Assembly (NCBI GenBank): GCA_002269645.1
Contig: NIVC01000130.1
Coordinates: 682,001 to 746,000 of the forward strand
DNA from: Macrostomum lignano
Taxonomy: Eukaryota
DNA: 64,000 bases
Reading direction: 5' to 3'
The notes beneath the pieces were generated by a model that was given only the letters and a program-made list of their open reading frames with translations, was not told the origin of the DNA and ran no database searches. Positions 20-47,439 of the stretch are shown in pieces. Each line of letters opens with the position of its first letter. Within the stretch, counting starts at the first letter, position 1. The position numbers and the translations under genes are program-made.

Positions 20-3000
20 GAGAACATCAGTACCCTTGAAAAGCAAATTGAAAAGCTGGAATACGACATCGAGCTGTTGATTGCGAATAGCAAAAAGAAG
101 AAGTTAGATCGCGATGTAAGTTCATAATAGAATTTAGCATCAAATTTTCCTATATTTCTGTACTTTTCCTTCAGTTTTATTGCTTAAAAATCTCTTTTAG
201 AAGCAAGACGAAATGGACTCAAAGAAAGACATTATTGGCAAGCATCGGTTCCACATTCAGCGCCTCGAAGCCATCATGCGAATGCTGGACAATGACAACT
301 TGGAGCTTGAGAAGGTACAAAACGTTATAAGAGTTCGATTTTTGACCAAGATTCCCGACTTCGGGCCTTGGGGACAGGGAAGCTCGGCGATCGGGGGTTT
401 GTCTTGCGATGTCACACTTATGAGGACCAATCCACAATGCGCAGGGAGTGTACATGTCTGACGATTAGAAAGTCAGGTCCACTGTGCACCCTGTGTGAGC
501 GTGTGCATGAGTGCGTGCCTGTGTACAGTATTGGTGCGCTTGTGTGTGCTCAGCAGTCAGCAGAATGAGCAGAATTGTCTTAGGCGCTGCTTGTGGGCCG
601 ATGGCAAGTCATCACCTTGTTTTATTAACTTTCCCAGGTGAAAGACATTAAAGACGACGTTGAGTATTACGTCAATCAAAATGAGGAAGCCGATTTCTGG
701 GAGAACTACAACGAAAATATCTACGACGAACTGGAGTTGGAAGATATTGGCGGTAGGTTGTTAATTTTGTCCTGACTTGCTGACACAAATTTTCAGTAAA
801 TTTTCTGAAAATCATCATGTATTGTCTGTCATTCTCACGACCTTCGTAACACAGCGCTGCCGCTTTTATGACTCAATATCACGAATTTCTTAACACAATC
901 TCGCGACTTTCGCTGACACAATCTCACGACTTTCACTGACACAATCTCACGACTCACTGACACAATCTCACGGCTTTCACTGACACAATCTCACGAATTT
1001 CTTAACACAATCTCACGACTTTCGCTGACACAATCTCACGGCTTTCACTGACACAATCTCACGGCTTTCACTGACACAATCTCACGACTTTCACTGACAC
1101 AATCTCACGACTTTCACTGACACAATCTCACGACTTTCACTGACACAATCTCACGACTTTCACTGACACAATCTCACGACTCACTGACACAATCTCACGA
1201 CTTTCACTGACACAATCTCACGACTTTCACTGACACAATCTCACGACTCACTGACACAATCTCACGACTTTCGCTGACACAATCTCACGACTTTCACTGA
1301 CACAATCTCACGACTTACTGACACAATCTCACGACTTACTGACACAATCTCACGACTTTCACTGACACAATCTCACGACTTACTGACACAATCTCACGGC
1401 TTTCACTGACACAATCTCACGACTTACTGACACAATCTCACGACTTACTGACACAATCTCACGGCTTTCACTGACACAATCTCACGACTTACTGACACAA
1501 TCTTACGACTTTCACTAACACAATCTCACGGCTTTCACTGACACAATCTCACGGCATTCACTGACAATCTCACGACTTTCACTGACACAATCTCACGACT
1601 TACTGACACAATCTCACGACTTTCACTGACACAATCTCACGACTTACTGACACAATCTCACGACTTACTGACACAATCTCACGACTTACTGACACAATCT
1701 CACGACTTTCACTGACACAATCTCACGACTTTCACTGACACAATCTCACGGCTTTCACTGACAATCTCACGACTTTCACTGACACAATCTCACGACTTAC
1801 TGACACAATCTCACGACTTACTGACACAATCTCACGACTTTCACTGACACAATCTCACGACTTACTGACACAATCTCACGACTTACTGACACAATCTCAC
1901 GACTTTCACTGACACAATCTCACAGCCTTCCTGACGCTGGTATCCAACAACACCCTCCTACATCCGCAGCAATCCTCGCAACTTCGCCGCACGACTCCGT
2001 TGACGAGACCACTCTGTCAGCCTCTATGGCAGCCGCAGCCGCCGCCGCCTCTGCGACCCCAACGACAACGTCTGCAACCAACGACAGTCAGCCTGCTGCT
2101 GCTCCACCGGCCGCATCAACCAGATCTGCATCCAGTGCATCCGCCGCCGCCACCACCGCTGCGACCGCTTATTCGGAGTCGACTCAGCCGCAGTCGCCGT
2201 TGACTCCGGCATCGCAGTCCGCGCACCCGCAGCCTCCGCCGCCGTTGATTCTGCCTTCTCAGCATCAGCACAACCAGCAGCAGCAGCAGCAGCCGCTGAT
2301 GTCCACCGCCGTTGCGAATCCGGCCGTTTCTTCTGGTTCTGCCGCTGCTCAGTCTCAGGCTGTGAAGTCACAGCTTCTGCCACAGCAGCAACAACAGCAG
2401 CAACAACAGCAACAGCAGCAGCAGATGGCACAGAATGTCACTACAGGCGGCAGCAGTCAGGCTACAAACGATGGCTCGGATCGCGAAGGCTCGACCGCTT
2501 CTGTTTCTGAAGTGGCGTCGCCTTCGGTGCTGTCTGGCGGGCAGCTGAAATCGCAGGACTTGTTCTCTAATCTGGGTGAGCCATTGTGGCGCCTCCGTTT
2601 TGTCAGCTTCTAGGTTATCCATCAAGGATGTGGTTTATCCACATCCTCTCAATGTTCAGTTGGGGGTTATCCACATCCTCCCAATGTTCAGCTGGGTTAT
2701 CCACATCTTCCCAAAGTTCAGGTGGAGGTTATCCACATCCTCCCAATGTTCAGGTGGGGTTATTCACATCCTATGTTAAGATGGAGGGTATCCACATCCA
2801 ATGTTCAGGTGGAGGTTATCCACATCCAATGTTCAGGTTAAGGTTATCCTCATCCTCCCAATGTTCAGGTGGGGTTATCCACATCCTCCCAATGTTCAGG
2901 TGGGGTTATCCACATCCTCCAAATGTTCAGGTGGGGGTTATCCACATCCTCCTAATGTTCAGGTGGAGGGTATCCACATCCAATGTTCAGGTTAAGGTTA

Positions 3001-5054
3001 TCCTCATCCTCCCAATGTTCAGGTGGGGTTATCCACATCCTCCCAATGTTCAGGTGGGGTTATCCACATCCTCCAAATGTTCAGGTGGGGGTTATCCACA
3101 TCCTCCTAATGTTCAGGTGGAGGGTATCCGCATCCAATGTTCAGGTTAAGGTTATCCACATCCTCCTAATGTTCAGGTGGGGGTTATCCTCATCCTCCCA
3201 ATGTTCAGGTGGGGTTATCCACATCCTCCCAATGTTCAGGTGGGGTTATCCACATCCTCCAAATGTTCAGGTGGGGTTATCCACATCCTCCAAATGTTCA
3301 GGTGGGGGTTATCCACATCCTCCTAATGTTCAGGTGGAGGTTATCCACATCCTCCAAATGTTCAGGTGGGGTTATCCACATCCTTCAAATGTTCAGGTGG
3401 GGGTTATCCACATCCTCCTAATGTTCAGGTGGAGGTTATCCACATCCAATGTTCAGGTTAAGGTTATCCTCATCCTCCCAATGTTCAGGTGGGGTTATCC
3501 ACATCCTCCCAATGTTCAGGTGGGGTTATCCACATCCTCCAAATGTTCAGGTGGGGGTTATCCACATCCTCCTAATGTTCAGGTGGAGGGTATCCACATC
3601 CAATGTTCAGGTTAAGGTTATCCTCATCCTCCCAATGTTCAGGTGGGGTTATCCACATCCTCCCAATGTTCAGGTGGGGTTATCCACATCCTCCAAATGT
3701 TCAGGTGGGGGTTATCCACATCCTCCTAATGTTCAGGTGGAGGGTATCCGCATCCAATGTTCAGGTTAAGGTTATCCACATCCTCCTAATGTTCAGGTGG
3801 GGGTTATCCTCATCCTCCCAATGTTCAGGTGGGGTTATCCACATCCTCCCAATGTTCAGGTGGGGTTATCCACATCCTCCAAATGTTCAGGTGGGGTTAT
3901 CCACATCCTCCAAATGTTCAGGTGGAGGGTATCCGCATCCTTTCAGTCTTGAGGGGTGGTTATCTACATTCTTACCAGCCTTAGGAGAAAAGTTATCCAC
4001 ATCCTCCCAACGCTCATTAATCCCATAATCCCCATAAATCGCTGCAGGCGGCAGCGCCAATTCGCAGTCCAGCAGTCAGGGGGGCGGCAGCGTCGGTGGC
4101 GGCGGTCTGCAATCGCTGCTCAGACTGAGCCAGGCGGGCCTGACGCCGCAGCACCAGTTGCTTCTGCAGCAGCAACAACAGCAGCAGCAGCAGACTGCAT
4201 CGTCGCTTCTGTCAGGCGGTGACGGCATCGGTGGATCATCAGTCGAGCCGCTTCTGCAGCAGCGCTCCGGTGGCATCCGCAGTCTGGCCGCCTCAGCTGC
4301 TGCTGCAGCCAACACCCAGCAGCAGCAACTGTTGCTTCAACAGCAGCAGCAGCAAGCGGCGGCTTCGTCAGGCAACTACTATGGCCAATCCACTGATCAG
4401 GCCCACCCAGCCGACCTGAAGCAGCTGTCATCGCAGGCTATTCTGGCTCGCCAACAACAGCAGCAGCCAGTTGTCTCCGTAGCCGGTTATCATCCGTCTT
4501 CGTACCTGACCTCCGCAGCTGCCCAGCAGCAGCAGCAGCAGCAGCAACAGGCTCAGCAACATCTGCAGACAATCCGACTCGACCCAATGTCCATAGCCGC
4601 CCCGTTACGGTCCCAGACTCCGCCTAGGCTGCAGGAGGCGCTCAGCAAGTTGGAGAACGGCTTCAAGAAGCTGCCGCACGCCGCCGATTCTGAACGATTT
4701 CGGCAGCACACAACGCATAATCCTACTCAGGTGCCGCCCTATTATCCGCAGTCGCCGCCGCCGGGCATGGACACCGAGGAGTTCTACGCCCGGCTAGACG
4801 TGCACACTCTGTTCTTCATCTTCTACTACTTCGAGGGCACCAAAGCCCAGTACTTGGCCGCTAAAACATTGAAGAAAATGTCCTGGCGATTCCACACCAA
4901 ATATCTGATGTGGTTCCAACGCCACGAGGAGCCCAAAACCATCACGGACGATTTCGAGAAGGGCACCTACGTTTATTACGACTACGAGAAGGCGGTGCAA
5001 AAGCGACGCGACTTCACGTTCGAGTACAAGTACCTTGAGGACAAGGATCTGTGA
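20..5054 (+). CDS. CNOT3: CCR4-NOT transcription complex subunit 3 (5'-partial). Exons 20-115, 201-314, 638-752, 1970-2575, 4048-5054
   Basis: Exons 1-3 translate to [32 protein letters not shown]|[38 protein letters not shown]|[37 protein letters not shown] (Not3 N-terminal domain). The last exon encodes the NOT-box ([52 protein letters not shown]...[10 protein letters not shown]). All introns are GT-AG with matching phases (0,0,1,1); exon sum 1938 nt is divisible by 3. Confidence 0.95.
890..1925. repeat. Intronic minisatellite, 21/23-bp unit (ACTGACACAATCTCACGACTTTC)
   Basis: Directly visible tandem array inside CNOT3 intron 753-1969, with degenerate copies leading into it. Confidence 0.95.
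2612..3940 (+). repeat. Intronic minisatellite, ~31-32-bp unit (GGTTATCCACATCCTCCCAATGTTCAGGTGGG)
   Basis: Tandem array in CNOT3 intron 2576-4047; source of the spurious ORFs at 2586-4028. Confidence 0.95.
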
Positions 5055-5644
5055 GACTGCGGCTTCTATAAATAAGCACAATGGATGTAATAGGTGTGCG
5101 CTAATACCAAGGACTGGCTCTGTCCGCGTGTCCGTCTCTATACATAACCATACACATTCACTCATTCACTATAAGCGTTTGAAGATTTATATGACGGCAT
5201 TTTTGCCAACAAGTCAACCGTATCTAGGGACACCCAGTGCGCGTATTTCTTCTGTCTACGAGTACTACCCTTCTGAACTTCTCAGTCATCGATTTCTTCT
5301 GATCTGCTTCTTCTTTGTCGTCTGTCTGTCTCTGTCTTATTGTTTGTTGGTTCGCTGCACCCATTCTCCCTCTCAACTCCCCGGCCATTGACTGCATCTG
5401 TGTCACTTCTTATTACCTATTATACGACATAATATAACTAACTAAAAAAGTGGTTTTAAAACGGCAGTAATGAAACAAAAAACATTTTGACAAGTTTACT
5501 ACTTCTTTCGTGTTTTTTGCTTCCATTCTTACACAAATTTTCTTTGAATTTGCTGACAAAACTCATAGCGACTCTTGTTCTCCACATGAGTAAGTTTCGC
5601 CCTAATTTAAAGGCAAACAGCGCTGACTAGCAGTGCTCTCTGAA

Positions 5645-7220
5645 TTTTGGGAGGATGTGCGGTCACCCACTGAAGCTTGGGAGGATGTCCATAACCCAGT
5701 CACTGAAGCTTGGGAGGGTGTGCATAACCAGTCACTGAAGCTTGGGAGGATGTGCAGTCACCCACTGAAGGTAGGGAGGATGTGCATAACCAGCCACTGG
5801 AGGTTGGGAGGATGTGCATAACCAGCCACTGAAGGTTGGGAGGATGTGCATAACCAGCCACTGGAGGTTGGGAGGATGTGCATAACCAGCCACTGAAGGT
5901 TGGGAGGATGTGCATAACCACCCACTGAAGGTTGGGAGGATGTGCATAACCAGCCACTGGAGGTTGGGAGGATGTGCATAACCACCCACTGAAGGTTGGG
6001 AGGATGTGCATAACCAGTCACTGAAGGTTGGGAGGATGTGCATAGTCACCCACTGAAGGTTGGGAGGATGTGCATAACCAGCCACTGAAGGTTGGGAGGA
6101 TGTGCATAACCAGCCACTGAAGGTTGGGAGGATGTGCATAACCAGCCACTGAAGGTTGGGAGGATGTGCATAACCAGCCACTGAAGGTTGGGAGGATGTG
6201 CATAACCAGCCACTGAAGGTTGGGAGGATGTGCATAACCAGCCACTGAAGGTTGGGAGGATGTGCATAACCACCCACTGAAGGTTGGGAGGATGTGCATA
6301 ACCAGCCACTGAAGGTTGGGAGGATGTGCATAACCAGCCACTGAAGGTTGGGAGGATGTGCATAACCAGCCACTGAAGGTTGGGAGGATGTGCATAACCA
6401 GCCACTGAAGGTTGGGAGGATGTGCATAACCAGCCACTGAAGGTTGGGAGGATGTGCATAACCACCCACTGAAGGTTGGGAGGATGTGCATAACCACCCA
6501 CTGAAGGTTGGGAGGATGTGCATAACCAGTCACTGAAGGTTGGGAGGATGTGCATAGTCACCCACTGAAGGTTGGGAGGATGTGCATAACCAGCCACTGA
6601 AGGTTGGGAGGATGTGCATAACCAGCCACTGAAGGTTGGGAGGATGTGCATAACCAGCCACTGGAGGTTGGGAGGATGTGCATAACCACCCACTGAAGGT
6701 TGGGAGGATGTGCATAACCAGTCACTGAAGGTTGGGAGGATGTGCATAGTCACCCACTGAAGGTTGGGAGGATGTGCATAACCAGCCACTGAAGGTTGGG
6801 AGGATGTGCATAACCAGCCACTGAAGGTTGGGAGGATGTGCATAACCACCCACTGAAGGTTGGGAGGATGTGCATAACCAGCCACTGAAGGTTGGGAGGA
6901 TGTGCATAACCAGCCACTGAAGGTTGGGAGGTTGTGCATAACCAGCCACTGAAGGTTGGGAGGATGTGCATAACCACCCACTGAAGGTTGGGAGGTTGTG
7001 CATAACCAGCCACTGAAGGTTGGGAGGTTGTGCATAACCAGCCACTGAAGGTTGGGAGGATGTGCATAACCACCCACTGAAGGTTGGGAGGATGTGCATA
7101 ACCAGCCACTGAAGGTTGGGAGGATGTGCATAACCAGCCACTGAAGGTTGGGAGGATGTGCATAACCAGCCACTGAAGGTTGGGAGGATGTGCATAACCA
7201 CCCACTGAAGGTTGGGAGGA
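5645..7220 (-). repeat. 32-bp minisatellite (CACTGAAGGTTGGGAGGATGTGCATAACCAGC), inverted relative of the 2612-3940 array
   Basis: About 49 near-identical units; the reverse complement GGTTATGCACATCCTCCCAACCTTCAGTGG aligns with the intronic unit. Confidence 0.95.
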
Positions 7221-7559
7221 CTGGTAGCTATAGTCGATGGCTCCAAATCCTGAAGAATTTAATTTTTCTCAGCAACCACAGGATTTTGCAATTGGCTCGA
7301 CATGCAGCTACGCTCGTGCGTGGCTTGATTTAATTTCTGTTGCGGAATAATTAAAGTACATGTATAACAAACTTCATTTATGGGAGGCTTGCGTAATCTT
7401 TGAACCGCTTAGATTGAAGGTTGTGTCATATGGTATCATATTTTTCACAACAAGAATGGTGTCATATTTATACATGTATCTCTTTAACTAAAGAAACCCT
7501 ACTTTTAAATCCGGAGTTAGGTTAAACGCGTAAAAGCTTCCAACAGTGAGAGTGACAGA

Positions 7560-9600
7560 TCTTAGCACTCTGAGTCTGTCACTCTTCAGATCTGTAACTC
7601 TGAATCTGTAACTTTCAGATCTCTTACAATTAACAGCCAACTAACAGTTAGTACTCTTCACAACTAACAGATTGAATCTGTCACTCTCAGTACTATCAGA
7701 TGGGCACTCTGAATCTGTCACTCTCAGTACTGTCAGATCGGCACTCTGAATCTGTCACTCTCAGTACTGTCAGATCGGCACTCTGAATCTGTCACTCTCA
7801 GTACTGTCAGATCGGCACTCTAAATCCGTCGCTCTCAGTACTGTCAGATCGGCACTCTGAATCTGTCACTCTCAGTACTATCAGATCGGCACTCTGAATC
7901 TGTCACTCTCACACTACTGCCAGATTAGCACTCTGAATCTGTCACTCTCACTACTGTCGTATTGGCACTCTGAATCTGTCACTGATCTCACTCCTGTCAG
8001 ATCGGCACTCTGAATCTGTCACTCTCACTACTGTCGTATTGGCACTCTGAATCTGTCACTCTTCACAACTATCAGATTGGCACTCTGAATCTGTCACTCT
8101 TCACAACTATCAGATTGGCACTCTGAATCTGTCACTCTCACTCCTGTCAGATCGGCACTCTGAATCTGTCACTCTTACTACTATCAGATCAGCACTCTGA
8201 ATCTGTCACTCTCACTACTATCAGATCGGCACTCTGAATCTGTCACTCTCACTCCTGTCAGATCGGCACTCTGAATCTGTCACTCTTACTACTGTCAGAT
8301 CGGCACTCTGAATCTGTCACTCTTACTACTATCAGATCGGCACTCTGAATCTGTCACTTTTACTACTATCAGATCGGCACTCTGAATCTGTCACTCTTAC
8401 TACTATCAGATCGGCACTCTGAATCTGTCACTCTTCACAACTATCAGATTGGCACTCTGAATCTGTCACTCTCACTTCTGTCAGATCGGCACTCTGAATC
8501 TGTCACTCTTACTACTATCAGATCGGCACTCTGAATCTGTCACTCTCACTACTATCAGATTGGCACTCTGAATCTGTCACTCTCACTCCTGTCAGATCGG
8601 CACTCTGAATCTGTCACTCTTACTACTGTCAGATCGGCACTCTGAATCTGTCACTCTTACTACTATCAGATCGGCACTCTGAATCTGTCACTTTTACTAC
8701 TATCAGATCGGCACTCTGAATCTGTCACTCTTACTACTATCAGATCGGCACTCTGAATCTGTCACTCTTCACAACTATCAGATTGGCACTCTGAATCTGT
8801 CACTCTCACTCCTGTCAGATCGGCACTCTGAATCTGTCACTCTTACTACTATCAGATCGGCACTCTGAATCTGTCACTCTCACTACTATCAGATTGGCAC
8901 TCTGAATCTGTCACTCTCACTCCTGTCAGATCGGCACTCTGAATCTGTCACTCTTACTACTGTCAGATCGGCACTCTGAATCTGTCACTCTTACTACTAT
9001 CAGATCGGCACTCTGAATCTGTCACTTTTACTACTATCAGATCGGCACTCTGAATCTGTCACTCTTACTACTATCAGATCGGCACTCTGAATCTGTCACT
9101 CTTCACAACTATCAGATTGGCACTCTGAATCTGTCACTCTCACTCCTGTCAGATCGGCACTCTGAATCTGTCACTCTTACTACTATCAGATCGGCACTCT
9201 GAATCTGTCACTCTCACTACTATCAGATTGGCACTCTGAATCTGTCACTCTCTTTCCTGTCAGATCGGCACTCTGAATCTGTCACTCTTACTACTGTCAG
9301 ATCGGCACTCTGAATCTGTCACTCTCACTCCTGTCAGATCGGCACTCTGAATCTGTCACTCTTACTACTATCAGATCGGCACTCTGAATCTGTCACTCTT
9401 ACTACTATCAGATCGGCACTCTGAATCTGTCACTCTCACTCCTGTCAGATCGGCACTCTGAATCTGTCACTCTTACTACTATCAGATCGGCACTCTGAAT
9501 CTGTCACTCTTACTACTATCAGATCGGCACTCTGAATCTGTCACTCTCACTCCTGTCAGATCGGCACTCTGAATCTGTCACTCTCACTTCTGTCCCATTT
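7560..9600 (+). repeat. 37-38-bp minisatellite (CAGATCGGCACTCTGAATCTGTCACTCTTACTACTAT), left arm of a foldback-like structure
   Basis: Tandem array visible directly. Confidence 0.95.
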
Positions 9601-10124
9601 GGCAGTTTAGATCTGACACTCTCCCAGTTGGTAAGGAGGCGGTTCGTCTAGAAATTATCAGTCTATGAAATTTTGTTTTACTTCATAAGCTTAACGCTGC
9701 AGATACTCACAAGTGGCATTACATGTAGCTGCACATTTTGTTCTCTTGCTCATTGAATCGAAGTGTATAAATAATAAATAAATAGCTACAGTGACAAAAC
9801 AGACCATTTTTACAATTGGCATCCAATTAATAGCAATAAAATGGAAATTTACTACGAGCTACTAGTGGATTATCTCTATATTTTGCTGTCCTAAAATTGG
9901 AGCTCAGTCGTCCATTGTTAAACAGAAATGCTTATTTTTTCCTTAATTTTAATTGCAGTTGGGGCCGCTGCTATTAAAGCGTTTAAGCAATAAAAAATCA
10001 TTTATGCTGGAGTCAGACTGATTTCGGAACTAGATCAAAGACGCGAAATTCTGGGAATCATAATTATGATTTCTCTTATCAGATTCACTCTTTTTGTTCT
10101 GACTATGCTAATTAATCTGCCAAT

Positions 10125-10893
10125 CTGACAGTAGTGAGAGTGACAGATTCAGAGTGCCAATCTGGCAGTAGTGAGAGTGACAGATTCAGAGTGCCAATCT
10201 GATAGTTGTGAAGAGTGACAGATTCAGAGTGCCAATCTGATAGTTGTGAAGAGTGACAGATTCAGAGTGCCAATACGACAGTAGTGAGAGTGACAGATTC
10301 AGAGTGCCAATCTGGCAGTAGTGTGAGAGTGACAGATTTAGAGTGCCAATACGACAGTAGTGAGAGTGACAGATTCAGAGTGCCAATCTGATAGTAGTGA
10401 GAGTGACAGATTCAGAGTGCCAATCTGGCAGTAGTGAGAGTGACAGATTCAGAGTGCCAATCTGATAGTTGTGAAGAGTGACAGATTCAGAGTGCCAATC
10501 TGATAGTTGTGAAGAGTGACAGATTCAGAGTGCCAATACGACAGTAGTGAGAGTGACAGATTCAGAGTGCCAATCTGGCAGTAGTGTGAGAGTGACAGAT
10601 TTAGAGTGCCAATACGACAGTAGTGAGAGTGACAGATTCAGAGTGCCAATCTGATAGTAGTGAGAGTGACAGATTCAGAGTGCCAATCTGATAGTTGTGA
10701 AGAGTGACAGATTCAGAGTGCCAATCTGATAATTGTGAAGAGTGACAGATTCAGAGTGCCAATCTGATAATTGTGAAGAGTGACAGATTCAGAGTGCCAA
10801 TCTGATAGTTGTGAAGAGTGACGGATTCAGAGTGCCAATCTGATAGTTGTGAAGAGTGACAGATTCAGAGTGCCAATCTGGCAGTAGTGAGAG
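10125..10893 (-). repeat. Same 37-38-bp family in inverted orientation (GACAGTAGTGAGAGTGACAGATTCAGAGTGCCAATCT), right arm
   Basis: Unit is the reverse complement of the 7560-9600 unit; ~520-bp unique spacer between the arms. Confidence 0.93.
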
Positions 10894-11118
10894 AAACACG
10901 AACAGAAATTGCCATTACTGTTTGCACTGCAAAGTACATGGCACGTACCGGTCGATCTTAATGCTTGTTTTATGGTTATTGTCTGCAATTAAAACCATGT
11001 TAACAATCGCACTTACTTGACGATAGAAGAGTAAAACAAAAACGCCCCTGAAAAAAAATCAGTTCAAATTGCTCATAATTATTGCTGTTTCCTGCCCTCA
11101 CTTCCGCTGTCTCAAATG

Positions 11119-11127
11119 TATTTATAA
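11119..11127 (+). promoter_or_regulatory. Candidate TATA box (TATTTATAA) of the small peptide gene
   Basis: Lies ~80 nt upstream of the ATG at 11205; position and consensus only. Confidence 0.35.
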
Positions 11128-11204
11128 GCCTACTGTTTTGGCGTGACAAAGCTAATCGAATTTAAACTTTTGGATTCATCAATTTTTTTCGAAACAAAAA
11201 AGCC

Positions 11205-11381
11205 ATGCGTATTTTGTGTCTTGCAGTGCTGCTGATTTGCTCTTTAGCAATGACCACCTTGGCCTGTCACCATCCAGGACATGTGTCTGACTGCAGCTGC
11301 GGTTCCGATCACTGGTGCCGTGGATCACACTCACGTTGCAAAGGCGGCTTCTGCATTGGTCAGGGAGGCTGCTATCACTGA
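11205..11381 (+). CDS. 58-aa secreted cysteine/histidine-rich peptide (defensin/toxin-like), single exon
   Basis: MRILCLAVLLICSLAMTTLA-CHHPGHVSDCSCGSDHWCRGSHSRCKGGFCIGQGGCYH*. Classic signal peptide (basic residue, hydrophobic core, T-L-A cleavage site), good Kozak context (GCCATGC), and AATAAA at 11411-11416. Below the 60-aa cutoff of the ORF track. Confidence 0.8.
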   Translation: MRILCLAVLLICSLAMTTLACHHPGHVSDCSCGSDHWCRGSHSRCKGGFCIGQGGCYH

Positions 11382-11503
11382 GTAGCCAGGCTCAAACATT
11401 TAAGTCTCTGAATAAATAGTACAGCATTGCAACTAACGGCTACTCTTTTGTGCAATGCTAGCATCTACCCAGCTGTGAATTGCCGTCTCAGTTATTTTAA
11501 AAA

Positions 11504-11623
11504 GTCAGTCAGTCAGTCAGTCAGTCAGTCAGTCAGTCAGTCAGTCAGTCAGTCAGTCAGTCAGTCAGTCAGTCAGCCACTCACTCACTCAAGTCAGTCA
11601 GTCAGTCAGTCAGTCAGTCAGTC

Positions 11624-11655
<32 letters not shown>

Positions 11656-12126
11656 AGTCAGTCAGTCAGTCAGTCAGTCAGTCAGTCAGTCAGTCAGTCA
11701 GTCAGTCAGTCAGCCACTCACTCACTCAAGTCAGTCAGTCAGTCAGTCAGTCAGTCAGTCAGTCAGTCAGTCAGTCAGTCAGTCAGTCAGTCAGTCAGTC
11801 AGTCAGTCAGTCAGTCAGTCAGTCAGTCAGTCAGTCAGTCAGTCAGTCAGTCAGTCAGTCAGTCAGTCAGTCAGTCAGTCAGTCAGTCAGTCAGCCACTC
11901 ACTCACTCAAGTCAGTCAGTCAGTCAGTCAGTCAGTCAGTCAGTCAGTCAGTCAGTCAGTCAGTCAGTCAGTCAGTCAGTCAGTCAGTCAGTCAGTCAGT
12001 CAGTCAGTCAGTCAGTCAGTCAGTCAGTCAGTCAGTCAGTCAGTCAGCCACTCACTCACTCAAGTCAGTCAGTCAGTCAGTCAGTCAGTCAGTCAGTCAG
12101 TCAGTCAGTCAGTCAGTCAGTCAGTC

Positions 12127-12158
<32 letters not shown>

Positions 12159-12526
12159 AGTCAGTCAGTCAGTCAGTCAGTCAGTCAGTCAGTCAGTCAG
12201 TCAGTCAGTCAGTCAGTCAGTCAGCCACTCACTCACTCAAGTCAGTCAGTCAGTCAGTCAGTCAGTCAGTCAGTCAGTCAGTCAGTCAGTCAGTCAGTCA
12301 GTCAGTCAGTCAGTCAGTCAGTCAGTCAGCCACTCACTCACTCAAGTCAGTCAGTCAGTCAGTCAGTCAGTCAGCCACTCACTCACTCAAGTCAGTCAGT
12401 CAGTCAGTCAGTCAGTCAGTCAGTCAGTCAGTCAGTCAGTCAGTCAGTCAGTCAGTCAGTCAGTCAGTCAGTCAGTCAGTCAGTCAGTCAGTCAGTCAGT
12501 CAGTCAGTCAGTCAGTCAGTCAGTCT
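11504..12526. repeat. (GTCA)n microsatellite with recurring GCCACTCACTCACTCAA interruptions
   Basis: Directly visible; source of the 418-aa SVSQ ORF. Confidence 0.97.
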
Positions 12527-13362
12527 GACAGTAGTGAGAGTGACAGATTCTGAGTGCCCATCTGACAGCTGTTTCTGTCTTTTAAAGAAACCAAATCGGT
12601 TTTTTATGAGCCTGAATTTAGTAATCATTGGTTTCTCAAAATTATGGCTGTTACGAGCTAGGTTGGAGTTCAAAATTTACTGATTTTACAAAGCGAGATA
12701 CAAAAGTAGGAAAAAGTCCGGATTTCATCAGAAATCAAATGTTTAAAACTGGACAGGCTACATATATGTGGATATATATAAGAGGGGCATGCAGATGTGG
12801 GGGTGAAGGCAGCTCCAGCCAATCAACGAACGAGAGGATGAACCCATGTAGTTTCTACTAAACTATGCTTTGTTGGAGGCCGCAAAAGTACATATTTTAC
12901 CTCTCTCAAAAAAACGCACGTATGCTTTTGGTTCCTTCCAACATTATATTTTACATTCTCGTCGTATTCAATGATCTACATTCAAACTAAGTCTCCTGCA
13001 TAGATCGATTGCAAACTGTGAAACTTTAGTGGTCGAGAGAGAGAGCGCGAGAGACGGAGACAGAAAGCCAGGCACGCAGGATCAAGTGCGATTTCGAAGA
13101 CAATGAGCAATGATCTAAGGCTACTCACCCGGCTCCCATTCTTTTCTGCCCGCGTCTGTCTGTCTGTCTGTCTAAAACCTGCTTCAGACCGCAACTAAGG
13201 AAGCAACTTGCGGAATTCTCGCCACTCTCGAGCAATGCACAGCTAGAATGCAGTACAGTGCAGTGCAGTGTACGCCTATTTCGCAAGCTAACACTTGAAA
13301 AAAACTCTCTTAAAGCGTTGAGGGAGTGGAGAATTTTTTTCGGGAAACGAGACCTCAAAGCA

Positions 13363-18439: not shown

Positions 18440-19562
18440 ATGACAGAGTTTCAGCATGGACTGTTCGCCTGCTTTGATGACTGCGGTGAGCCAATGTGTT
18501 CTCTGTTAATACGTGTATGATTGTCCAAGACATGTGGCATGGTACTGTGACGAATAAGGAGAATAAGACGGATTTGTGTAGCGGTTAATTTAGATAGTTC
18601 ACGATTAGTTGGCAGATCGGCAAGCCGCTTCAACCCTTAGACTTTTGCTAGTGCTACTTAAAATTGCTGGGTCAGTTAATTAACTAATTGGTGTGCCAAG
18701 GTAGACGGCGGAAGAGTTGGTGTATAGGAGGCCAGACAGCGTCACAGCTAAGGGTTAGCAAGCCTAGGTCTAGAGGCGAAGCAAGGGGAAGGGCGAGAGC
18801 GGCTGCTGACTGCAGTGTAAGCATATATTTAAAGGTAAACAGATAACAACAACACCCTTAATCCAAAACCCAGACAAAAAAACCCCCACGCAACGCGCAA
18901 TGTACATGTACAAATTAATCGATAATATATATCGTGCAAGAATAACATCACGTCAGTACATGTACATAGGTAGAAATACTTTACGAGAAATAATAACGAT
19001 ATGAATGAAATACAAATAATAGAATAAATACATACGAGGCTACAAAAACAAAGCAATTAACAGTAAAAATAGCGCGATAATAATACGTACGAATATTGTT
19101 AAAATAAATGAAAGAATACGGTATGCATATGAAAATAAAAAAATACGATACACGCGCTTCTACGAATCACACTGTCACAGTACACTATTGATTAAGTGAC
19201 TGGGATACAGTATTCACTACATGATTGAGATGCAGCATTGATTCAGTGACTGAAATATTATGCATACACACTCAACCATAGGTCTCTGCCTTATCACCTA
19301 TCTCGTGCCGTGCTACACCTTCGGCATGAACGCCGAGGCCGTTGGCGAGAATTGCTTCGTCTGCGGCCTGGGCATGGTCTGCGGCCTCAGCTTCATTCTT
19401 GGCCCAATGATTCGAAGCAAAATTCGCGAACGCCAAGGCATACCGGGCAGCTTCATGGCCGACTGTTGTATTTGGTTCTTCTGCAGCTTCTGCGCTCTGG
19501 TGCAGGAGGGCCTGGAGGTCAAGACGTTCGCTGCTAGGCCACAGCGCATCGAAAGGGAATAG
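18440..19562 (+). CDS. PLAC8/cornifelin family cysteine-rich protein (108 aa). Exons 18440-18485, 19282-19562
   Basis: MTEFQHGLFACFDDCG|LCLITYLVPCYTFGMNAEAVGENCFVCGL...IRSKIRERQGIPGSFMADCCIWFFCSFCALVQEGLEV. Matches the PLAC8 signatures (GLF.CFDD, .PC..FG, R.KIR...GIPGS...DC...CC..CAL.QE). Phase-1 GT-AG intron. Confidence 0.9.
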
Positions 19563-19689
19563 AAAACTCAACTGGATCTCTGTGATTAAATAATTTTGCT
19601 GTCATATAATTTTATAGACTTTGTAGTTTTTATAGACTCCTTTCGAAGAATCCTAGGGGTCTGTTGTAACTTACCATTAACAGACTCTG

Positions 19690-20400
19690 CGGAGAGCGGA
19701 ATCGCTAGATAAAATGAGGTGGTGGGTTGAGGGAGGCTTGTTGCTGTGCAGTAATGAGCTCTGCGGTGAACGGAATCGCTAGATAAAATGAGGTGGTGGG
19801 TAGAGGTAGGCTTGTGTATGTACACTGATGAACTCTGCGGAGTCGGAATCGCTTGATAAAATGGGGTGGTGGGTAGAGGTAGGCTTGTGTATGTACACTG
19901 ATGAACTCTGCGGAGTGGGAATCGCTGGATAAAATGAGGTGGTGGGTAGAGGTAGGCTTGTGTATGTACACTGATGAACTCTGCGGAGTCGGAATCGCTA
20001 GATAAAATGAGGTGGTGGGTAGAGGTAGGCTTGTGTATGTACACTGATGAACTCTGCGGAGTCGGAATCGCTAGATAAAATGAGGTGGTGGGTAGAGGTA
20101 GGCTTGTGTATGTACACTGATGAACTCTGCGGAGTGGGAATCGCTGGATAAAATGAGGTGGTGGATAGAGGTAGGCTTGTGTATGTACACTGATGAACTC
20201 TGCGGAGTGGGAATCGCTGGATAAAATGAGGTGGTGGATAGAGGTAGGCTTGTGTATGTACACTGATGAACTCTGCGGAGTCGGAATCGCTGGATAAAAT
20301 GAGGTGGTGGGTAGAGGTAGGCTTGTGTATGTACACTGATGAACTCTGCGGAGTGGGAATCGCTGGATAAAATGGGGTGGTGAGTAGAGGGAGGCTTGTT
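19690..20400. repeat. 73-bp minisatellite, ~10 units
   Basis: GATAAAATGAGGTGGTGGGTAGAGGTAGGCTTGTGTATGTACACTGATGAACTCTGCGGAGTCGGAATCGCTA recurs every 73 bp (e.g. 19782, 19855). Confidence 0.93.
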
Positions 20401-21465: not shown

Positions 21466-22476
21466 CTAAGTTGGATATGTAGAAACAAACTTCCGAAAGA
21501 GGCCCAAGTAGAGAATTTCTTGTTGCTTTGTCTCTTCAACACAGTTGGTCTTCTCAAATTCATGCAAATCCTGGTCCAACTCCGTCAGTGCAGCTTCTTC
21601 CTGGCCAGGTCCATCAATCTCCCATAACAATTCGAAGAGTCTGTTGCTTGCCTCGTCGAGATAATCGTCATCGTCATCACCAAACACCCCGTTGCTCATC
21701 AACCAGCGCCATCACTCCATGCCAGTCCAAAGTCTGGTCTATCTCCGTAGCCGTAAGACCCGAAATCATTTCATCTCGAAATTTAGAGAGGTCAATAAGT
21801 CTAGCGGTTCGAGACATTTTCGGCTCCTGTCTTTCTTGTCTAGTCTCGTCTTTCTGGTCCAACTCAAACTTTAAGTCACCGCTCTTATAATCTCTTAGTT
21901 TGTGGTAAAACTCCAGCTTCGTGTGAAAACCCTCGATGTCTTTGGCTATCCATATATGTCTATGGCTATCCATCTATGTCTATGGCTATCCATCTATGTC
22001 TATGGCTATCCATCTATGTCTATGGCTATCCATCTATGTCTATGGCTATCCATCTATGTCTATGGCTATCCATCTATGTCTATGGCTATCCATCTATGTC
22101 TATGGCTATCCATCTATGTCTATGGCTATCCATCTATGTCTATGGCTATCCATCTATGTCTATGGCTATCCATCTATGTCTATGGCTATCCATCTATGTC
22201 TATGGCTATCCATCTATGTCTATGGCTATCCATCTATGTCTATGGCTATCCATCTATGTCTATGGCTATCCATCTATGTCTATGGCTATCCATCTATGTC
22301 TATGGCTATCCATCTATGTCTATGGCTATCCATCTATGTCTATGGCTATCCATCTATGTCTATGGCTATCCATCTATGTCTATGGCTATCCATCTATTTC
22401 TATGGCTATCCATCTATGTCTATGGCTATCCATCTATGTCTATGGCTAAAATCAGGAGATCGAAGGCTTCGCCCAT
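21466..22476 (-). pseudogene. Acidic ~169-aa protein-like ORF broken by a 500-bp satellite and one frameshift
   Basis: Removing 21948-22447 restores MGEAFDLLILAKDIEGFHTKLEFYHKLRD...; a 1-nt shift in the G run near 21687-21690 continues into VFGDDDDDYLDEASNRLFELLWEID...STYPT*. Minus-strand AATAAA at 21347-21352. Confidence 0.55.
21948..22447. repeat. 20-bp minisatellite (TATGGCTATCCATCTATGTC) x25
   Basis: Nearly perfect tandem array. Confidence 0.97.
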
Positions 22477-24380: not shown

Positions 24381-25745
24381 ATGTCTGTAAAAGACAGCTC
24401 TATGGAGCGAACAAACATCGAGGTCAGCAAGATGAAGTCCATCTGCCGAAGACTATTTTGCATGCGCTTCTCGTCCAGTGGTCGACTGCAGTTCAACAGG
24501 ATCAGTCTGTTGGCTCTGGTTGCGTATCTTCTGCTTGTGCAACTACTCTTGGCGCACCTTTGGCGAAGCACTTATAAGATACACTCCATGGAGATTCGCT
24601 TGCCGCAGGCGGCTCTGTCGAGCCAGACGCCCGGAGCTTACTTGTGCACCGCTGTCAGCCTCCGAGACCCGAGGAACGCGTCAGCAATCAGGCCAATCTA
24701 CATCGTCGAGTTCGAGCCGCTGGTGCCACCGAATCCAACAAACTCCGAGATCCATGTGCATCACATGCTACTCGCCGAATGCAACGAGCTACCAGAAGGT
24801 GTCGGCGTCAATGGGCACGGCTGGTGGAACTGTGGTCTGGGACACCACAAAGACAGCGCCGTATCCGGGAACAGCAGCAAAGAGATGTGCTCGGTACGGC
24901 AGCGGTACCTGTTCGCCTATTCGAACAGTGCGGAAGCGTTCCAGCTACCGCGGAAGGTCGCGATGCCCGTGGGAGACTCTCGTTTCTACGGCGGAGCGCA
25001 CCTGGTGCTGCAGGTACGAAGATCTACATATTTTGTGTCTCATAATAAGTACAAGCAAATGTCTCGTACTGACAACTAATTATGCGTAAATGACAACCAG
25101 GTGCACTACTCTAGTGGAAACCAACGGTTGCACGTCCATCCAAATCAGCATCACTCCCCTGCAGTTGGAGACCGCAGGCCCGGTCTCCGTCTCCGCTACC
25201 TGAATGAGACGGGAAATCATTACCGAGTGGCCGGAGTCCACCTGTCTTCAACGTCGATCAGACCCGACGTCCGCTCTCGACACACCACCGGCTGTGAGTA
25301 CACTGGCGAACTGCCGATAAGACCATTTGGTCTTCGGGTGCACACTCACTCGCTGGGCAGGCTGGTCTCCGTGTACAGAGTGCGTCGGCCCCGGCTGCCC
25401 CAGGACCCGATGGTTTGGCACCTCATCGGCCAGGCCGACCCGCGCCAACCGCAGGCCTACTATGCCGCAAATGCGAGCAGCGACCTGACAGTGAAGCCAG
25501 GCGATCTCATTGCGACAGCGTGCGCCACTACAGGCGGCAGAGGTGGCAGGTCCGCCCCAGTTGAGACGTGCAACGCCTGGCTCATTTTCTGGTTTGAGCA
25601 GTTGGACGCATTGTCGAAAGTGACTGGGCCGGATGGCCACGAGGGCAAAGTGGATCTGCAACAAGACTGCATCAGTAGTGGCTCGGCGTTGAGCCTCTGG
25701 TCTGATGCGCCGAAATGGGTTGAGAAGCAGGCTTTTTTGGTGTAA
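24381..25745 (+). CDS. PHM: Monofunctional peptidylglycine alpha-hydroxylating monooxygenase (PHM)-like protein, 425 aa. Exons 24381-25013, 25101-25745
   Basis: Motifs AYLC, HVHHMLLAEC, LVLQ|VHY, LRVHTHSLGRLVSVYRVR, LIGQADPRQPQAYY, VKPGDLIATAC, ETCN correspond to the copper type II ascorbate-dependent monooxygenase domains. 87-bp phase-0 GT-AG intron; N-terminal hydrophobic anchor; no PAL domain. Confidence 0.88.
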
Positions 25746-26149: not shown

Positions 26150-27420
26150 GCTGTCAGATTCCATATAATGTTTGTAGTGACTTGTCAGATCCCATATGAT
26201 GTCTGTAGTAATTTTCAGATCTCTGAATATGATGTCCGTAGTGACTGTCAAATCTTATATGATGTTTGTAGTGACTGTCAGATCTCATATGATAGTGATT
26301 TTCAGTTCTCATATGATGTCCGTGGTGACAGTGAAATCCCATTGGATGTCTGTAGTGACCGTCAGATCCCATATGATGTCTGTAGTGATTTTCAGATCCC
26401 ATAGAATGTCTGTAGTGACTGTCAGATCCCATAGAATGTCTGTAGTGACTGTCAGATCCCATAGAATGTCTGTAGTGACCGTCAGATCCCATATGATGTC
26501 TGTAGTGATTTTCAGATCCCATAGAATGTCTGTAGTGACTGTCAAATCCCATAGAATGTCTGTAGTGACCGTCAGATCCCATATGATGTCTGTAGTGATT
26601 TTCAGATCCCATAGAATGTCTGTAGTGACTGTCAAATCCCATAGAATGTCTGTAGTGACTGTCAGTTTTCATATGATGTCCGTAGTGACAGTGAAATCCC
26701 ATTGGATGTCTGTAGTGACCGTCAGATCCCATATGATGTCTGTAGTGATTTTCAGATCCCATAGAATGTCTGTAGTGACTTTCAAATCCCATAGAATGTC
26801 TGTAGTGACTGTCAAATCCCATAGAATGTCTGTAGTGACTGTCAGATCCCACAGAATGTCTGTAGTGACCGTCAGATCCCATATGATGTCTGTAGTGATT
26901 TTCAGATCCCATAGAATGTCTGTAGTGACTGTCAAATCCCATAGAATGTCTGTAGTGTCTGTCAGATCCCATAGAATGTCTGTAGTGACTGTCAGATCCC
27001 ATAGAATGTCTGTAGTGACTGTCAGATCCCATAGAATGTCTGTAGTGACTGTCAGATCCCATAGAATGTCTGTAGTGACCGTCAGATCCCATATGATGTC
27101 TGTAGTGATTTTCAGATCCCATAGAATGTCTGTAGTGACTGTCAAATCCCATAGAATGTCTGTAGTGTCTGTCAGATCCCATAGAATGTCTGTAGTGACT
27201 GTCAGATCCCATAGAATGTCTGTAGTGACCGTCAGATCCCATATGATGTCTGTAGTGATTTTCAGATCCCATAGAATGTCTGTAGTGACTGTCAAATCCC
27301 ATAGAATGTCTGTAGTGACTGTCAGATCCCATAGAATGTCTGTAGTGACTGTCAGATCCCATAGAATGTCTGTAGTGACCGTCAGATCCCATATGATGTC
27401 TGTAGTGATTTTCAGATCCC
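26150..27420. repeat. 30-bp minisatellite (GATCCCATAGAATGTCTGTAGTGACTGTCA) with higher-order variant pattern
   Basis: About 42 units; source of ~410-aa ORFs on both strands. Confidence 0.95.
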
Positions 27421-28760
27421 CATAGTCACTACGCTGATTGACCAACTGTGAAGTCTCAATTGTGCTGAGCGATTGCTCAGACGCATCATGCTCTCTACAT
27501 GTTAGCTCTTACTCACCATTATGGTAACTAACTATTAGAATTACGTACTGTAATTATAATTTCCCTTGCGTTTTCTTTCTCTAACCTACACTATGCAACT
27601 GTGTGCTCCAGGCAGTGCTAGAATGTCTAATAGTGTGCGTGTGCATCGGATTTCCTTTCCCTGTATCATACCGGCCTATGAAATGCTGAGACCAACGACT
27701 TCACCTGGGCGAGTGTACATTCGATATTTGTAGACTATAGAGACCACTGAGTTCTAGAGTTAACTAGCTATCTGGATTGGAAAGCTAGAGCAACCTCGTG
27801 TATAAGAGAACTTTTTTAAACGTGGTGGAAGTGGAAGTAGTGGCATAGCCATAGCCTCAGGGATCATAGAGGTCATATGGGGGTCATGACGCGCCCCCAA
27901 ATAGCTAACGATGAAAATTTTGAATCTTAATTAATTTTATAATCGGCGCTATGGGCGCTGATTTAGCGCCACTGACTAGATGTTTCTCACACCTCTCAAA
28001 AAATGTTACGCTCCTAAAGAAGCTTTAAAGATTGAAATACAAGTAGCCGTGCCCGTGATCGATATCTTTCATTTTTTAGTCACTCAATGAACTTTTTACG
28101 AACTTCCCGCAAACAAGCGGTACATGTAGAGGACAATTGACAAGGCATTAATAGCGTGCCTATTGATAAGTTCCGCTGAACCTGCGGGGTAAGTCCATGT
28201 CCTGTCCCGCCTGTTATTCTTCCTTTGGCGAGGCGGTGCGTTTAACAACTGTCAATGGGGTTGTTAACTTGTTTCCTTTCTAATTCTAGTCTAGATTTCG
28301 TTAAGTCTAGAACTCCGTGACTCACCGCCCCGCCCCAAACCCCCCTTTACCACCCACCACCCCAAGCACCCACCACCCCAAGTACCCACCACCCCGAACA
28401 CCCACCACCCCATACCCTCGTGCCGCACATGACCAACTCTGCCCTCTCCTCGCTTGCGCGTAGAAAATAGCTTGCTCCTGCAGATGCTCTAGCTTCTATG
28501 TAGAATAGAACGAGAACCCAGCCAGCGCCCACTCCCTTCCCCATTGCCCTCTAGCTGTATATATTAACTGTACATTGTACAATTAATTCCTGCAAACTCA
28601 CTTTTTAGTTAAGCAAGAATAAATATTCTCCCACGCTGGGCTTTTACAGTCCTTAACTGTTTACTGTGCTCCAGCCCTAAACAAAAAGCGACAAGCTAAG
28701 ATAAGATAAGAGATAATTAGAGCCACTTGCAACTCCCGTAACACAAATTAGCTTCCCCAA

Positions 28761-33715: not shown

Positions 33716-35974
33716 CTTTTGAATCTCTCTGGCCCAGAGAAACCCTGGGAAGGGCGCGCAGCTTTCACAGTTTTTTGCTGTCATCAGCGAGATAAAGGAA
33801 GTTTTCTGATGTTTTGTAGCACCAAATATCTAACCTGTGCACTCAGAGATGCACTCAAAAGTTTATCGAGAAAAAATTGAAAAGCATCGTTGAAGAGCGG
33901 CAACGTAACGTAAAACTACCCTGATGCAGAGAAATTTCTAGTCGATCATTATTAACTGCTCTGCAGGATTCTGTAACTCATCAACTGCTAAAAAGGAAGT
34001 TAGACAAGAAGCAATACAATTACTACTTTTAGTGATACGTAACGCTTCATTTTGACGTTTTATTTTTCCTGCGATCTCATGAGCAATGGTGTATACGATG
34101 TTACGATTTTCGTATTTTTTAGCTGAAAAATGTTATTATCATCTGCATGGTACCACAGTCACAGTCGTGCCGAAAACTGCATGGTTCGATTCCTACTAGC
34201 GCGAACTAAAATAGCCACATGTAATCTGAGGCTTGTCCAAGTCCAAGAGGGCGGACCTGTTACTGATTATTTTGTTATAGTCTGTCAGCTATTAGTGTTG
34301 TAACCGTCTTTGATTAACGTATTGATGAAGCTAAAATATAACATGATGCATGACGAAAATTCTAAAAAGTTTCCTATCTTCTAGTTCAAAATTGTATTTA
34401 TAAATATCTGCTCTTTCACTAAATTAAATTCATTGTTAGCACATACGATTATTTTATTTGGCTGTTTCTCATTTATTAAACCCACTGTCTGTTGAGCAGA
34501 TAGCTAGTGCGAGTTCTTAGGCCACAAGTTAGTTGCTTGTTTCTATATAAACTGTTCTTTAAACAAAAATCAAAGTATAGCTACATAAATTATTTTATCG
34601 AGTGGAACCATTTTTCATGATTAATTTATCAAAAATTAACTGTATCGGATTTAGTATTTTAAATATTTTTGTTGTTTTCATTCAAAATTCATTTAGCTAA
34701 AGTTATTCAAATTCAACTTTGAACTCAAAATAGAAATGTCCTACATTTTATAATTTGTTACTTGTTAGTAAAAAACTAAAAAATTTCCCAAAACTGATTG
34801 ACGCGAAACTAGCTTATATTATTGATGAATCTAAATATGTTTATTAATAAACATACCGGTAAATAAGGATTTGGCATGATGCAGCTTTAGATATAGTGGT
34901 TATTCGTACTGTACCCTTTTAAATCCAGTAAATCCAGAATTAAAAATGAAGTCAATTTTTTCATTTTGAAGCTTCAAAAAATTATCTTTAGACAGCCGAC
35001 TTCAATAACTAAAACTTTAATTTTAACAAAATCATTTTTAGAATGAGGCACAATGACAACTGAAACCAGTGATTGGATAGCTAATAAAACAGAGTATATT
35101 GTCTTTTGGCAAAATATAGGCAAGGCAAATGAAATATAAAAATATAACTATAGAAAAAGTTAATAATACCAGCAGCAACTAATTTTTTAAATGATTTTAA
35201 AAATCAGACAGTACATCTGATTCTTGTGCATGGTAAATAATATTTACTATTAACTGTTACGGTTTGACAATGAATATTTTATTTGATTAAACAAACAGGC
35301 AAAATAATCGTTACAAATTACTGAATTTAGCTACAATGATAAGTTATAGTTCTATGTATATAGTATAGAAAACTTTTTTCATTGGACTCGTATTTGGATA
35401 AAAAAAGGCAAATGAAATTAACAAAAAATTCACCATTGAAAAAGCGATCTATGAGCAAACTGTTTTCGGATACAAATGATGAAGAGAAGACATGAACACG
35501 GCAAAACCAGCCAAATGTACGCTAAATATAATGGCAGTAGGAAAGGTGTACAAGCAGCGTATTTTGTTGTACAATGTAATGTCAAATAAAAACTATAATA
35601 AATACGCTCGTAATGTAGTGGAAATTTCTGAATAAAAATTAGTAATAAACACTATTAAGCATTGAAACCTTACCCCACTCATGCTGTATGATCACGAAAA
35701 GTTCAGAGAGAAATGGAAATCTACAAGCAGTGTAAGAACTTGTTTAATTTTTTTAAAATAAAAATTTTCAAAAGTTTTCAGCAGCAAGGATATAAAAACA
35801 TACACACTATAATAATTTCAGTAAATGTACAGCGGATAATAACCAATAGTAAAATTCTAAACAGTAAAACTAAAATATTAAATATGAGAAAACAACCTAA
35901 AATACCCATATTAAGTGTGAATAAACAAGATTTTTTGGCTTTGAAATCGTTCAGTTGTCCGTTATACTCGTATT

Positions 35975-36634
35975 TTAGTCTCTAAACGTAATCTCTTCGA
36001 CGCACTTCTTAGCTCTTTCTCGACAGGCCTCGGGCAGGTAGTCGAATTCCGTAATCATTTTAACACCGTTCAATAGCTCCTCGTCGCGTTTCCGTTTGAG
36101 CAGCAGGTCGGCCAGTCTAATCAAATAAACGGACGCCTCCTCATCTGGCACTCCGTCACCCATGGTGGCCATCATTCCTATAGCCAGGCCGACCGCTTCC
36201 ATCATGCTAGGCCGATCCCAGGGCCTCGAACGCAGGCTAACATTGCCCATTAGAACGTATGCACAGTCTAGCAGGCGGCGGAACATCACAGGCCGATTCC
36301 AGCCATCTTGGATCAACTCTTCTAGGCCGTCGATCACCTGCATGCGCGAGAGAAAGGACGGGATGTGAGGGATGAGTTTAAGGGGAGGGGGTGGGGGGCG
36401 GGCCATGTACATTTAGGGACGAGATTTAGCGTGTGTGTGTACATTTAGGGACGAGATTGAGTGAGTGAGTGAGTGAGCGAGTGAGTGAGTGAGTGAGTGA
36501 GTGAGTGAGTGAGTGAGTGAGTGAGTGAGTGAGTGAGTGAGTGAGCGAGTGAGTGAGTGAGTGAGTGAGTGAGTGAGTGAGTGAGTGAGTGAGTGAGTGA
36601 GTGAGTGAGTGAGTGAGTGAGTGAGTGACCGATT

Positions 36635-46710: not shown

Positions 46711-47439
46711 TTGAAAGTCTTGAGTCAACCATAACGCCAATCCATAGTCTCGGAAGCAGAGCAGACTAAGCATAGCTCGTATAAACAGTAAGCTGAGGAC
46801 ATTTCCCCCAATACACATACGGCTAAGCATATATTGATGGCGATAACCGCCCCGGGGCTTGAAGGGCAAATTGGACTTGCCATCTATAATCCGTATAGGC
46901 TAAAGTTATGTCTTCTCGCATAGTAAGCGTGCGATAGAAAATGAGGAGCGGACAGAGGACACGAGAATCCGGGGAGAGGGTAGAAAGACGGGAGATACCG
47001 CCCAAGGGGGGAATTCTTAGTTCCCCTTCCCTTCCTTCCCGAGGAAGGATCTCGCCGAGCCAACCAAATCAGCGCTGATTGGTCGATCGCAGCACCCCCA
47101 ACCCCCTTCGTTGCCCCCCGATCCCCCCTCTCCCACAGACGCTCGCTAGCTGGTCAGTTTTTTAAAATTGGTAACCCTCCCTCCCTCCTCTCCCGCCTCG
47201 CCTCTTAATTCCCCGGCTTTTTGGGACTCGCCGAGGCGTGGGAATGGGTGCGATGGAGAGAGAGGGAGAGACTGGCAAAGAGTAGGAAGACGAGAAGAGA
47301 GGCTGAGTGTAAGAGGAGGGAGGGTGAGCCGAGCGAACTGATCAGACGGGGCTTTTTTGAGTGAAATCTTCTGCATCAGCGTCGGGTTGGTCCGAGTAAT
47401 TCTTGGCGGGTGCACACGAGACAAGAAGCGAGGAATATC

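Follow-up and report, generated by a model that had tools for sequence, protein, structure and literature searches.

A unique 609-bp island at positions 10894..11502 carries what we read, with slightly better than even credence, as a small, intronless and lineage-restricted gene for a secreted Cys-rich peptide. The island, which would hold the whole putative gene unit, lies in animal nuclear DNA and has no second copy in the window (the entire stretch of 64,000 nucleotides analysed here). The gene reading is favoured because the open reading frame (ORF) is rare under a null model, forms an exon-like GC island, is followed by a complete poly(A) layout and begins with a plausible signal peptide.

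The ORF occupies positions 11205-11381 of the forward strand. It translates to MRILCLAVLLICSLAMTTLACHHPGHVSDCSCGSDHWCRGSHSRCKGGFCIGQGGCYH, a product of 58 amino acids (aa), followed by a stop codon (TGA, 11379..11381) identified by direct reading and translation. An earlier sequence-only reading held that the ORF track had overlooked this peptide for being shorter than 60 aa. This is confirmed: the translation is identical, and the ORF enters the list only if the minimum length is set below 60 aa (30 aa was used). There is an in-frame stop 13 codons 5' of the ATG at 11205 and no other start in between. Hence, the position of the ATG is fixed. It sits in the start context AAGCCATGCG (11199..11208, forward strand), with a purine (G) at -3.

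The first 20 residues, MRILCLAVLLICSLAMTTLA (11205..11264, forward strand), form a predicted signal peptide. The n-region is MR, the h-region spans I3-A15 and the c-region is MTTLA. We applied heuristic n-/h-/c-region rules, rather than a trained predictor, asking for a positive n-region, an h-region of 7-15 hydrophobic residues and small residues at -3/-1. All three features are present, in the arrangement MR, ILCLAVLLICSLA and MTTLA followed by C. The best 10-residue Kyte-Doolittle mean of the N-terminus is 3.52, and a value of 2.3 is reached by 2.7% of ORFs in the null model. The -3/-1 rule is satisfied after A20 (TLA/CH) and also after A15 (SLA/MT). By these heuristics the signal peptide proposed earlier, with its hydrophobic h-region and compatible cleavage sites, stands. 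No dibasic processing site, propeptide or amidation signal was found in the 58-aa precursor. A neuropeptide precursor was considered and rejected, dibasic and amidation sites being absent.

The region C-terminal of Ala20 is the predicted mature peptide (11265..11378, forward strand). By count, its 38 residues include 7 Cys, 6 His and 8 Gly. The Cys spacing is C-8-C-1-C-5-C-6-C-4-C-5-C. Both the Cys and His counts and the spacing agree with those given previously.

Signals that could direct expression flank the ORF, and were read directly from the DNA. A TATA-like box, TATTTATAAG, is located at 11119..11128 of the forward strand (TATAAG at 11123-11128), 82 nt 5' of the ATG. Its presence upstream had been claimed; the match alone is weak, since the window has ~1.2 TATAA strings per kb. 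On the 3' side, the AATAAA hexamer reported 30 nt after the stop was found at 11411..11416 of the forward strand. It is followed by CA dinucleotides at 11422-11431 and, 3' of the putative cleavage site, by a U/GU-rich element, CTCTTTTGTG (11443..11452, forward strand). We take CTCTTTTGTG to be a downstream element, by analogy with the usual order of signals at metazoan poly(A) sites. The order of the poly(A) region is canonical: AATAAA, then CA 6-15 nt on, then the GU-rich sequence. An AATAAA within 80 nt downstream was seen for 7 of 148 ORFs in the window. Two genes in the window have similar ends. For CNOT3 (4158-5075) an AATAAA lies ~16 nt after the stop, and for PLAC8 (19260-19590) an ATTAAA lies ~25 nt after it. 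Very short 3'UTRs would thus seem to be the norm in this genome, and one of 30 nt for the ORF fits.

The alternative that best survives is a chance ORF in unique, non-coding intergenic DNA that separates two unstable repeat arrays. We regard this as unlikely, though it has to be taken seriously. The TATA-like and AATAAA strings are each frequent. Furthermore, the window holds 43 open frames with at least 6 Cys per 38 aa. These are mostly derived from repeats, whereas the sequence of the ORF is non-repetitive. Among the 148 ATG-initiated ORFs of 40-120 aa in the window, only two combine a hydrophobic N-terminus with at least 6 Cys; the second is a genuine PLAC8 exon. As a null we used a 3rd-order Markov model of the window. 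In 400 simulated windows, the expectation for a signal-peptide-like N-terminus with at least 7 Cys was 0.0275 per window, which at these loose criteria amounts to dozens per genome. In addition, the ORF was a post hoc choice from a whole-genome scan. Conversely, no simulated window (0/400) held an ORF at the observed stringency (hydrophobicity of at least 3.0, at least 7 Cys and no more than 70 aa). Multiplying further by the frequencies of an AATAAA within 80 nt (~5%) and of a TATA-like box (~13%) gives far less than one such ORF per genome, if these are independent. Thus, the ORF as a whole exceeds chance expectation.

Base composition also argues against a chance ORF. The ORF has a GC content of 53%; the portions of the island 5' and 3' of it have 36% and 40%, respectively. 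In sliding windows, GC is 0.52-0.60 within the ORF and 0.30-0.40 outside, and the changes fall at the start and stop codons. The result is a sharp GC island exactly over the ORF. By GC content the ORF ranks 9th of 147; the PLAC8 exon ranks 3rd.

Codon usage is neutral, which suits a chance ORF. When all six frames over this interval are scored for codons, that of the ORF comes out best. Its Cys codons (TGC 7, TGT 2) and His codons (CAC 4, CAT 2) agree with the preferences of the exons in the window (0.73 and 0.75). The synonymous-codon score is -0.02, compared with a mean of -0.17 for non-coding ORFs and 0.17-0.40 for five of six exons. GC3 is low (0.53): five of six exons reach 0.71-0.80, and the sixth, from the ion channel, stands at 0.55. 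The codon log-likelihood and synonymous scores did not discriminate. The want of any homologue, paralogue or recorded product in the collections searched, described next, would also be expected of a chance ORF.

No homologue of the peptide was returned by a word-indexed search of 5.8 billion clusters or by exhaustive phmmer against 1.84 billion representatives, and PDB sequences gave no match at E<=10. A back-translated scan of JGI metagenome contigs produced 499 pattern matches, none of which was confirmed. The exact product has no record in the product index, the peptide string has no match in literature full text, and tblastn within the window detected no paralogue. Rfam and tRNA scans were empty, ruling out an explanation by a non-coding RNA or a SINE head. 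The only Pfam match, to DUF6732, was rejected as sub-threshold and reliant on the signal peptide. The precursor scores 18.1 bits against a gathering threshold of 27 bits, and the mature peptide alone scores 10.4 bits (E=0.62). The alignment runs across the junction of the signal peptide with HHPGH. No literature was found for DUF6732.

The source lineage appears, from sequence comparisons, to have no close representative in the collections searched. The C-terminal exon of CNOT3 (4158-5054) encodes the highly conserved NOT-box region, yet its best database identity is only 61-70%. A 168-aa ORF elsewhere in the window (40328-40834, reverse strand) has no detectable relative. Hence, the failure to find homologues of the peptide is a weak negative. 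It is weakened further because, in databases of such size, relatives of a Cys-rich module of 38 aa would fall below significance at 35-40% identity. The sequence-only reading would have had the peptide abandoned if transcript, peptide and homologue evidence were all lacking. In the collections searched all three are absent, a result that counts for less given that the lineage itself is missing.

A second alternative concerns the repeats on either side. The ORF had been placed in a repeat-unstable pocket, and this description is apt. A minisatellite with a 37/76-bp period (10118..10893) abuts the island on its left and an (AGTC)254 microsatellite (11503..12525), with periodic AGCCACTCACTCACTCA interruptions, abuts it on its right. 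Beyond the microsatellite lies a minisatellite relic of ~1.2 units (12525..12568), with the same unit as the 10118-10893 array. The segment 10894-12525 could have entered the minisatellite whole, for instance as an mRNA retroposed by LINE machinery or as a non-autonomous element, the same unit being found on both sides of it. In that case the ORF would belong to a mobile element, or else be a live or dead retrocopy of a gene at another locus. We consider such an origin improbable. The first 16 nt of the relic, CTGACAGTAGTGAGAG, match 10878-10893, CTGGCAGTAGTGAGAG, at 15 of 16 positions. This direct duplication, CTGRCAGTAGTGAGAG (10878-10893 and 12525-12540), brackets the 1.63-kb segment of island and (AGTC)254. 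It resembles, and may be, a target-site duplication left by an insertion that ended in simple repeats, but we treat it as a lead only. It is weak evidence because the interruption of a periodic array always yields some overlap. The long simple-repeat tail that ends the segment would suit an insertion, although it begins ~85 nt past the AATAAA and not ~20 nt. An intronless ORF with its own AATAAA is likewise expected of a retrocopy, and codon usage unlike that of the neighbouring genes would suit a decaying one. Against this, the window contains no other copy of the island, the segment has no tRNA-like or Rfam-recognised head, and TE protein domains are absent nearby. An insertion would, in any case, be compatible with a functional peptide gene.

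That the ORF is instead one exon, first or internal, of a larger gene with several exons, and the 58-aa product not the real protein, is very unlikely: the introns of this genome can be short with weak polypyrimidine tracts (87 nt, GTACGA...ACCAG, in the PHM gene) and there are GT dinucleotides within the ORF, but these are poor donors on inspection, the frame is closed by the stop 13 codons upstream and the stop at its end, the AATAAA, CA and GU signals follow directly, ~1 kb of microsatellite comes next, and no further non-repetitive Cys-rich frame or exon was found near the ORF.

The sequence-only reading went beyond a secreted peptide, and proposed a metallo-antimicrobial one on the strength of two motifs. 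The first is the gamma-core, for which the formula is [X1-3]-GXC-[X3-9]-C and which is described as a positively charged, amphiphilic beta-hairpin (PMC9820530). The segment GFCIGQGGC fits the formula, so that the claim of a pattern match is upheld. The antimicrobial role drawn from it is not. A GXC-X3-9-C pattern occurs in 63% of composition-preserving shuffles of the mature peptide, and the match thus has no discriminating value given the 8 Gly and 7 Cys present. Moreover, GFCIGQGGC contains no charged residues, and the predicted hairpin (24-26/29-31) overlaps it only in part. The second motif is ATCUN, a free N-terminal X-X-His. This would require cleavage exactly after Ala20, when a site after Ala15 satisfies the -3/-1 rule as well, and 16% of shuffles place a His third. 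The ATCUN claim is not supported. Unlike the ORF as a whole, neither the gamma-core nor the His3 motif exceeds chance expectation.

The calculated net charge of the mature peptide is +0.9 at pH 7.4 and +5.6 at pH 5.5, the rise being due to the six His. A charge of +0.9 at pH 7.4 is not typical of cationic antimicrobial peptides. With uninformative motifs, low charge and no known Cys framework, the case made for a metallo-antimicrobial peptide falls away. Such a reading is possible, but would take its substance only from the His richness and the pH-dependent charge; any antimicrobial or ATCUN function is speculative.

The Cys spacing had been described as unlike that of CS-alpha-beta defensins. 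This is correct, and the beta-defensin, knottin, EGF and hepcidin patterns fail as well. The CS-alpha-beta framework, which we took to be C...CXXXC...GXC...CXC, has no full match in the mature peptide, and no CXXXC is present. Defensin families in Pfam gave no match at E<=10. There was no regular-expression match to the beta-defensin/big defensin pattern C-x4-8-C-x3-5-C-x9-13-C-x4-7-CC, adjacent CC being absent, or to the knottin loops CX3-7CX3-8CX0-7CX1-4CX4-13C. The eight-Cys arrangement of hepcidin, with C-x2-CC, is absent from a peptide with seven Cys and no CC. An EGF-like domain was rejected, the EGF_1 and EGF_2 patterns and Pfam all being negative. A metallothionein was rejected too, since the precursor has a signal peptide, His and aromatic residues are present, and no profile matched. 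Well-folded disulfide peptides seldom have an odd number of Cys, as this one does.

A single-sequence AlphaFold2 model of the mature peptide is of moderate confidence, with a mean pLDDT of 65.6 that rises to 76-77 over residues 11-30. It shows one beta-hairpin, formed by residues 24-26/29-31. Foldseek against the PDB returned nothing below E=4.8. The matches, to evasin-4 and a ginsentide over 14 aligned columns (E ~5), are to cystine-knot peptides, non-significant and without evidential value.

In its general organisation the candidate resembles the secreted disulfide-rich effectors of invertebrates. These likewise combine a signal peptide, here of ~20 aa, with a Cys-rich module of 30-50 aa, here of 38 aa with 6-7 Cys, in a compact gene. 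They are often lineage-restricted orphans, and here too no relatives were detected outside the lineage. The candidate differs in having no propeptide, dibasic or amidation site and an odd number of Cys, and in being known from sequence alone. With the CS-alpha-beta and beta/big defensins it shares its size, the signal peptide, at least 6 Cys and the formal GXC-X3-9-C match. Unlike them, it has neither CXXXC nor CC, its C-X-C is N-terminal rather than C-terminal, and its charge at pH 7.4 is +1. Knottins also have six Cys in ~30 residues and a short beta-hairpin, which here is predicted. However, loop 1 of the candidate is 1 or 8 residues, outside the knottin range, and there is no significant structural match.

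Three further classes bear on metal binding. Hepcidin-25 has an ATCUN X-X-His that binds Cu/Ni, 8 Cys with CC pairs, and a propeptide removed by furin cleavage. The candidate is alike in being a disulfide-rich secreted peptide with a putative X-X-His N-terminus, which hinges on the predicted cleavage site. The CC pairs and the furin-cleaved propeptide are absent. Microplusin and hebraein, from ticks, are helical, His- and Cys-rich peptides of ~90-100 aa that chelate copper, with metal sequestration rather than membrane lysis as their proposed mode of action; the literature links microplusin to copper. The candidate would share secretion, 6 or more Cys, His enrichment and the proposed metal sequestration. 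Conversely, the tick peptides are longer and helical, and the candidate has no sequence or family match to them. Metallothioneins are cytosolic, lack a signal peptide, contain ~30% Cys and are usually without His and aromatic residues. C-X-C (CSC) and CKG-type motifs and a Gly/Ser-rich composition are common to these proteins and the candidate. The candidate, in contrast, has a predicted signal peptide, His and aromatics, and no Pfam match.

For the small peptide gene that we favour, we infer from these features how transcription, secretion, cleavage, disulfide formation and activity might proceed. Transcription would start ~30 nt past TATAAG and the transcript would be cleaved ~15 nt past AATAAA, giving an RNA of ~280 nt. 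The 58-aa precursor would enter the ER by means of its N-terminal signal peptide. Signal peptidase would probably cut behind Ala20, releasing a peptide of 38 aa, with Ala15 as the second choice and a 43-aa product. The released peptide might fold as a compact module, built around a beta-hairpin (residues 24-31 of the mature form) and held by three disulfides within the chain, leaving the seventh Cys free or available to form a dimer. The six His would confer a strongly pH-dependent charge (~+1 at pH 7.4, ~+5.6 at 5.5) and a capacity to coordinate divalent metals. The peptide could then act as an extracellular effector in host defence, as a toxin or in metal handling. A bolder proposal, which we regard as a long shot, is that it is the founding member of an unseen His-/Cys-rich family from a sparsely sampled group of animals: a pH-switched, Cu/Zn/Ni-binding defence effector with a new seven-Cys framework and possibly a disulfide dimer.

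If transcribed, the ORF would exemplify the short secreted-peptide genes that length-thresholded gene finders miss. It would add a new Cys framework, with unusual His content, to the invertebrate effectors of a lineage without close database relatives. Its site within a pair of fast-mutating repeats, possibly following insertion, would make it a case for the origin and movement of young secreted-peptide genes. If it is not transcribed, it serves as a caution that gamma-core and ATCUN "motifs" are nearly free of information in Gly/Cys/His-rich sequence.

The repeats next to the ORF have further structure. The AGCCACTCACTCACTCA blocks punctuate (AGTC)254 to give a higher-order repeat and an artefactual ORF of 418 aa (11427-12683). 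Arrays of the 37-bp minisatellite unit are found at ~7540-9588 and 10118-10893, in opposite orientations. They enclose a unique, AT-rich core of 528 bp (9590-10117, GC 35%). A long inverted pair of tandem arrays of this kind bears a likeness to a foldback-type element or a hairpin-prone structure. Within the core there is an ATG-initiated ORF of 43 aa (9691-9822, reverse strand), probably due to chance, whose N-terminus is hydrophobic and whose short tail has the spacing C-x4-C-x3-C (MPIVKMVCFVTVAIYLLFIHFDSMSKRTKCAATCNATCEYLQR).

Besides the CNOT3 exon and the PLAC8 exon at ~19260, the window contains an ankyrin-repeat exon and an ion-channel exon (Pfam Ion_trans), the latter presumably resembling a T-type calcium channel. 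A PHM-type copper monooxygenase is encoded by two exons (24381-25745) separated by an 87-nt GT-AG intron (25014-25100), in which a polypyrimidine tract is almost absent. Two blocks, at 34001-36000 (GC 29%) and 42001-44000 (GC 34%), are markedly AT-rich compared with the window mean of ~46%. Minisatellites are exceptionally dense: more than 20 unrelated arrays, with periods of 12-76 bp and many longer than 1 kb, occupy introns and intergenic DNA and make up a large share of the window. Examples are at 869-1935, 2635-3969, 5667-7220, 19684-20399, 21936-22448, 26151-27425, 38925-39644, 45644-46711, 47677-48576 and 50495-51340. The minisatellites are the source of most long ORFs on the six-frame track.
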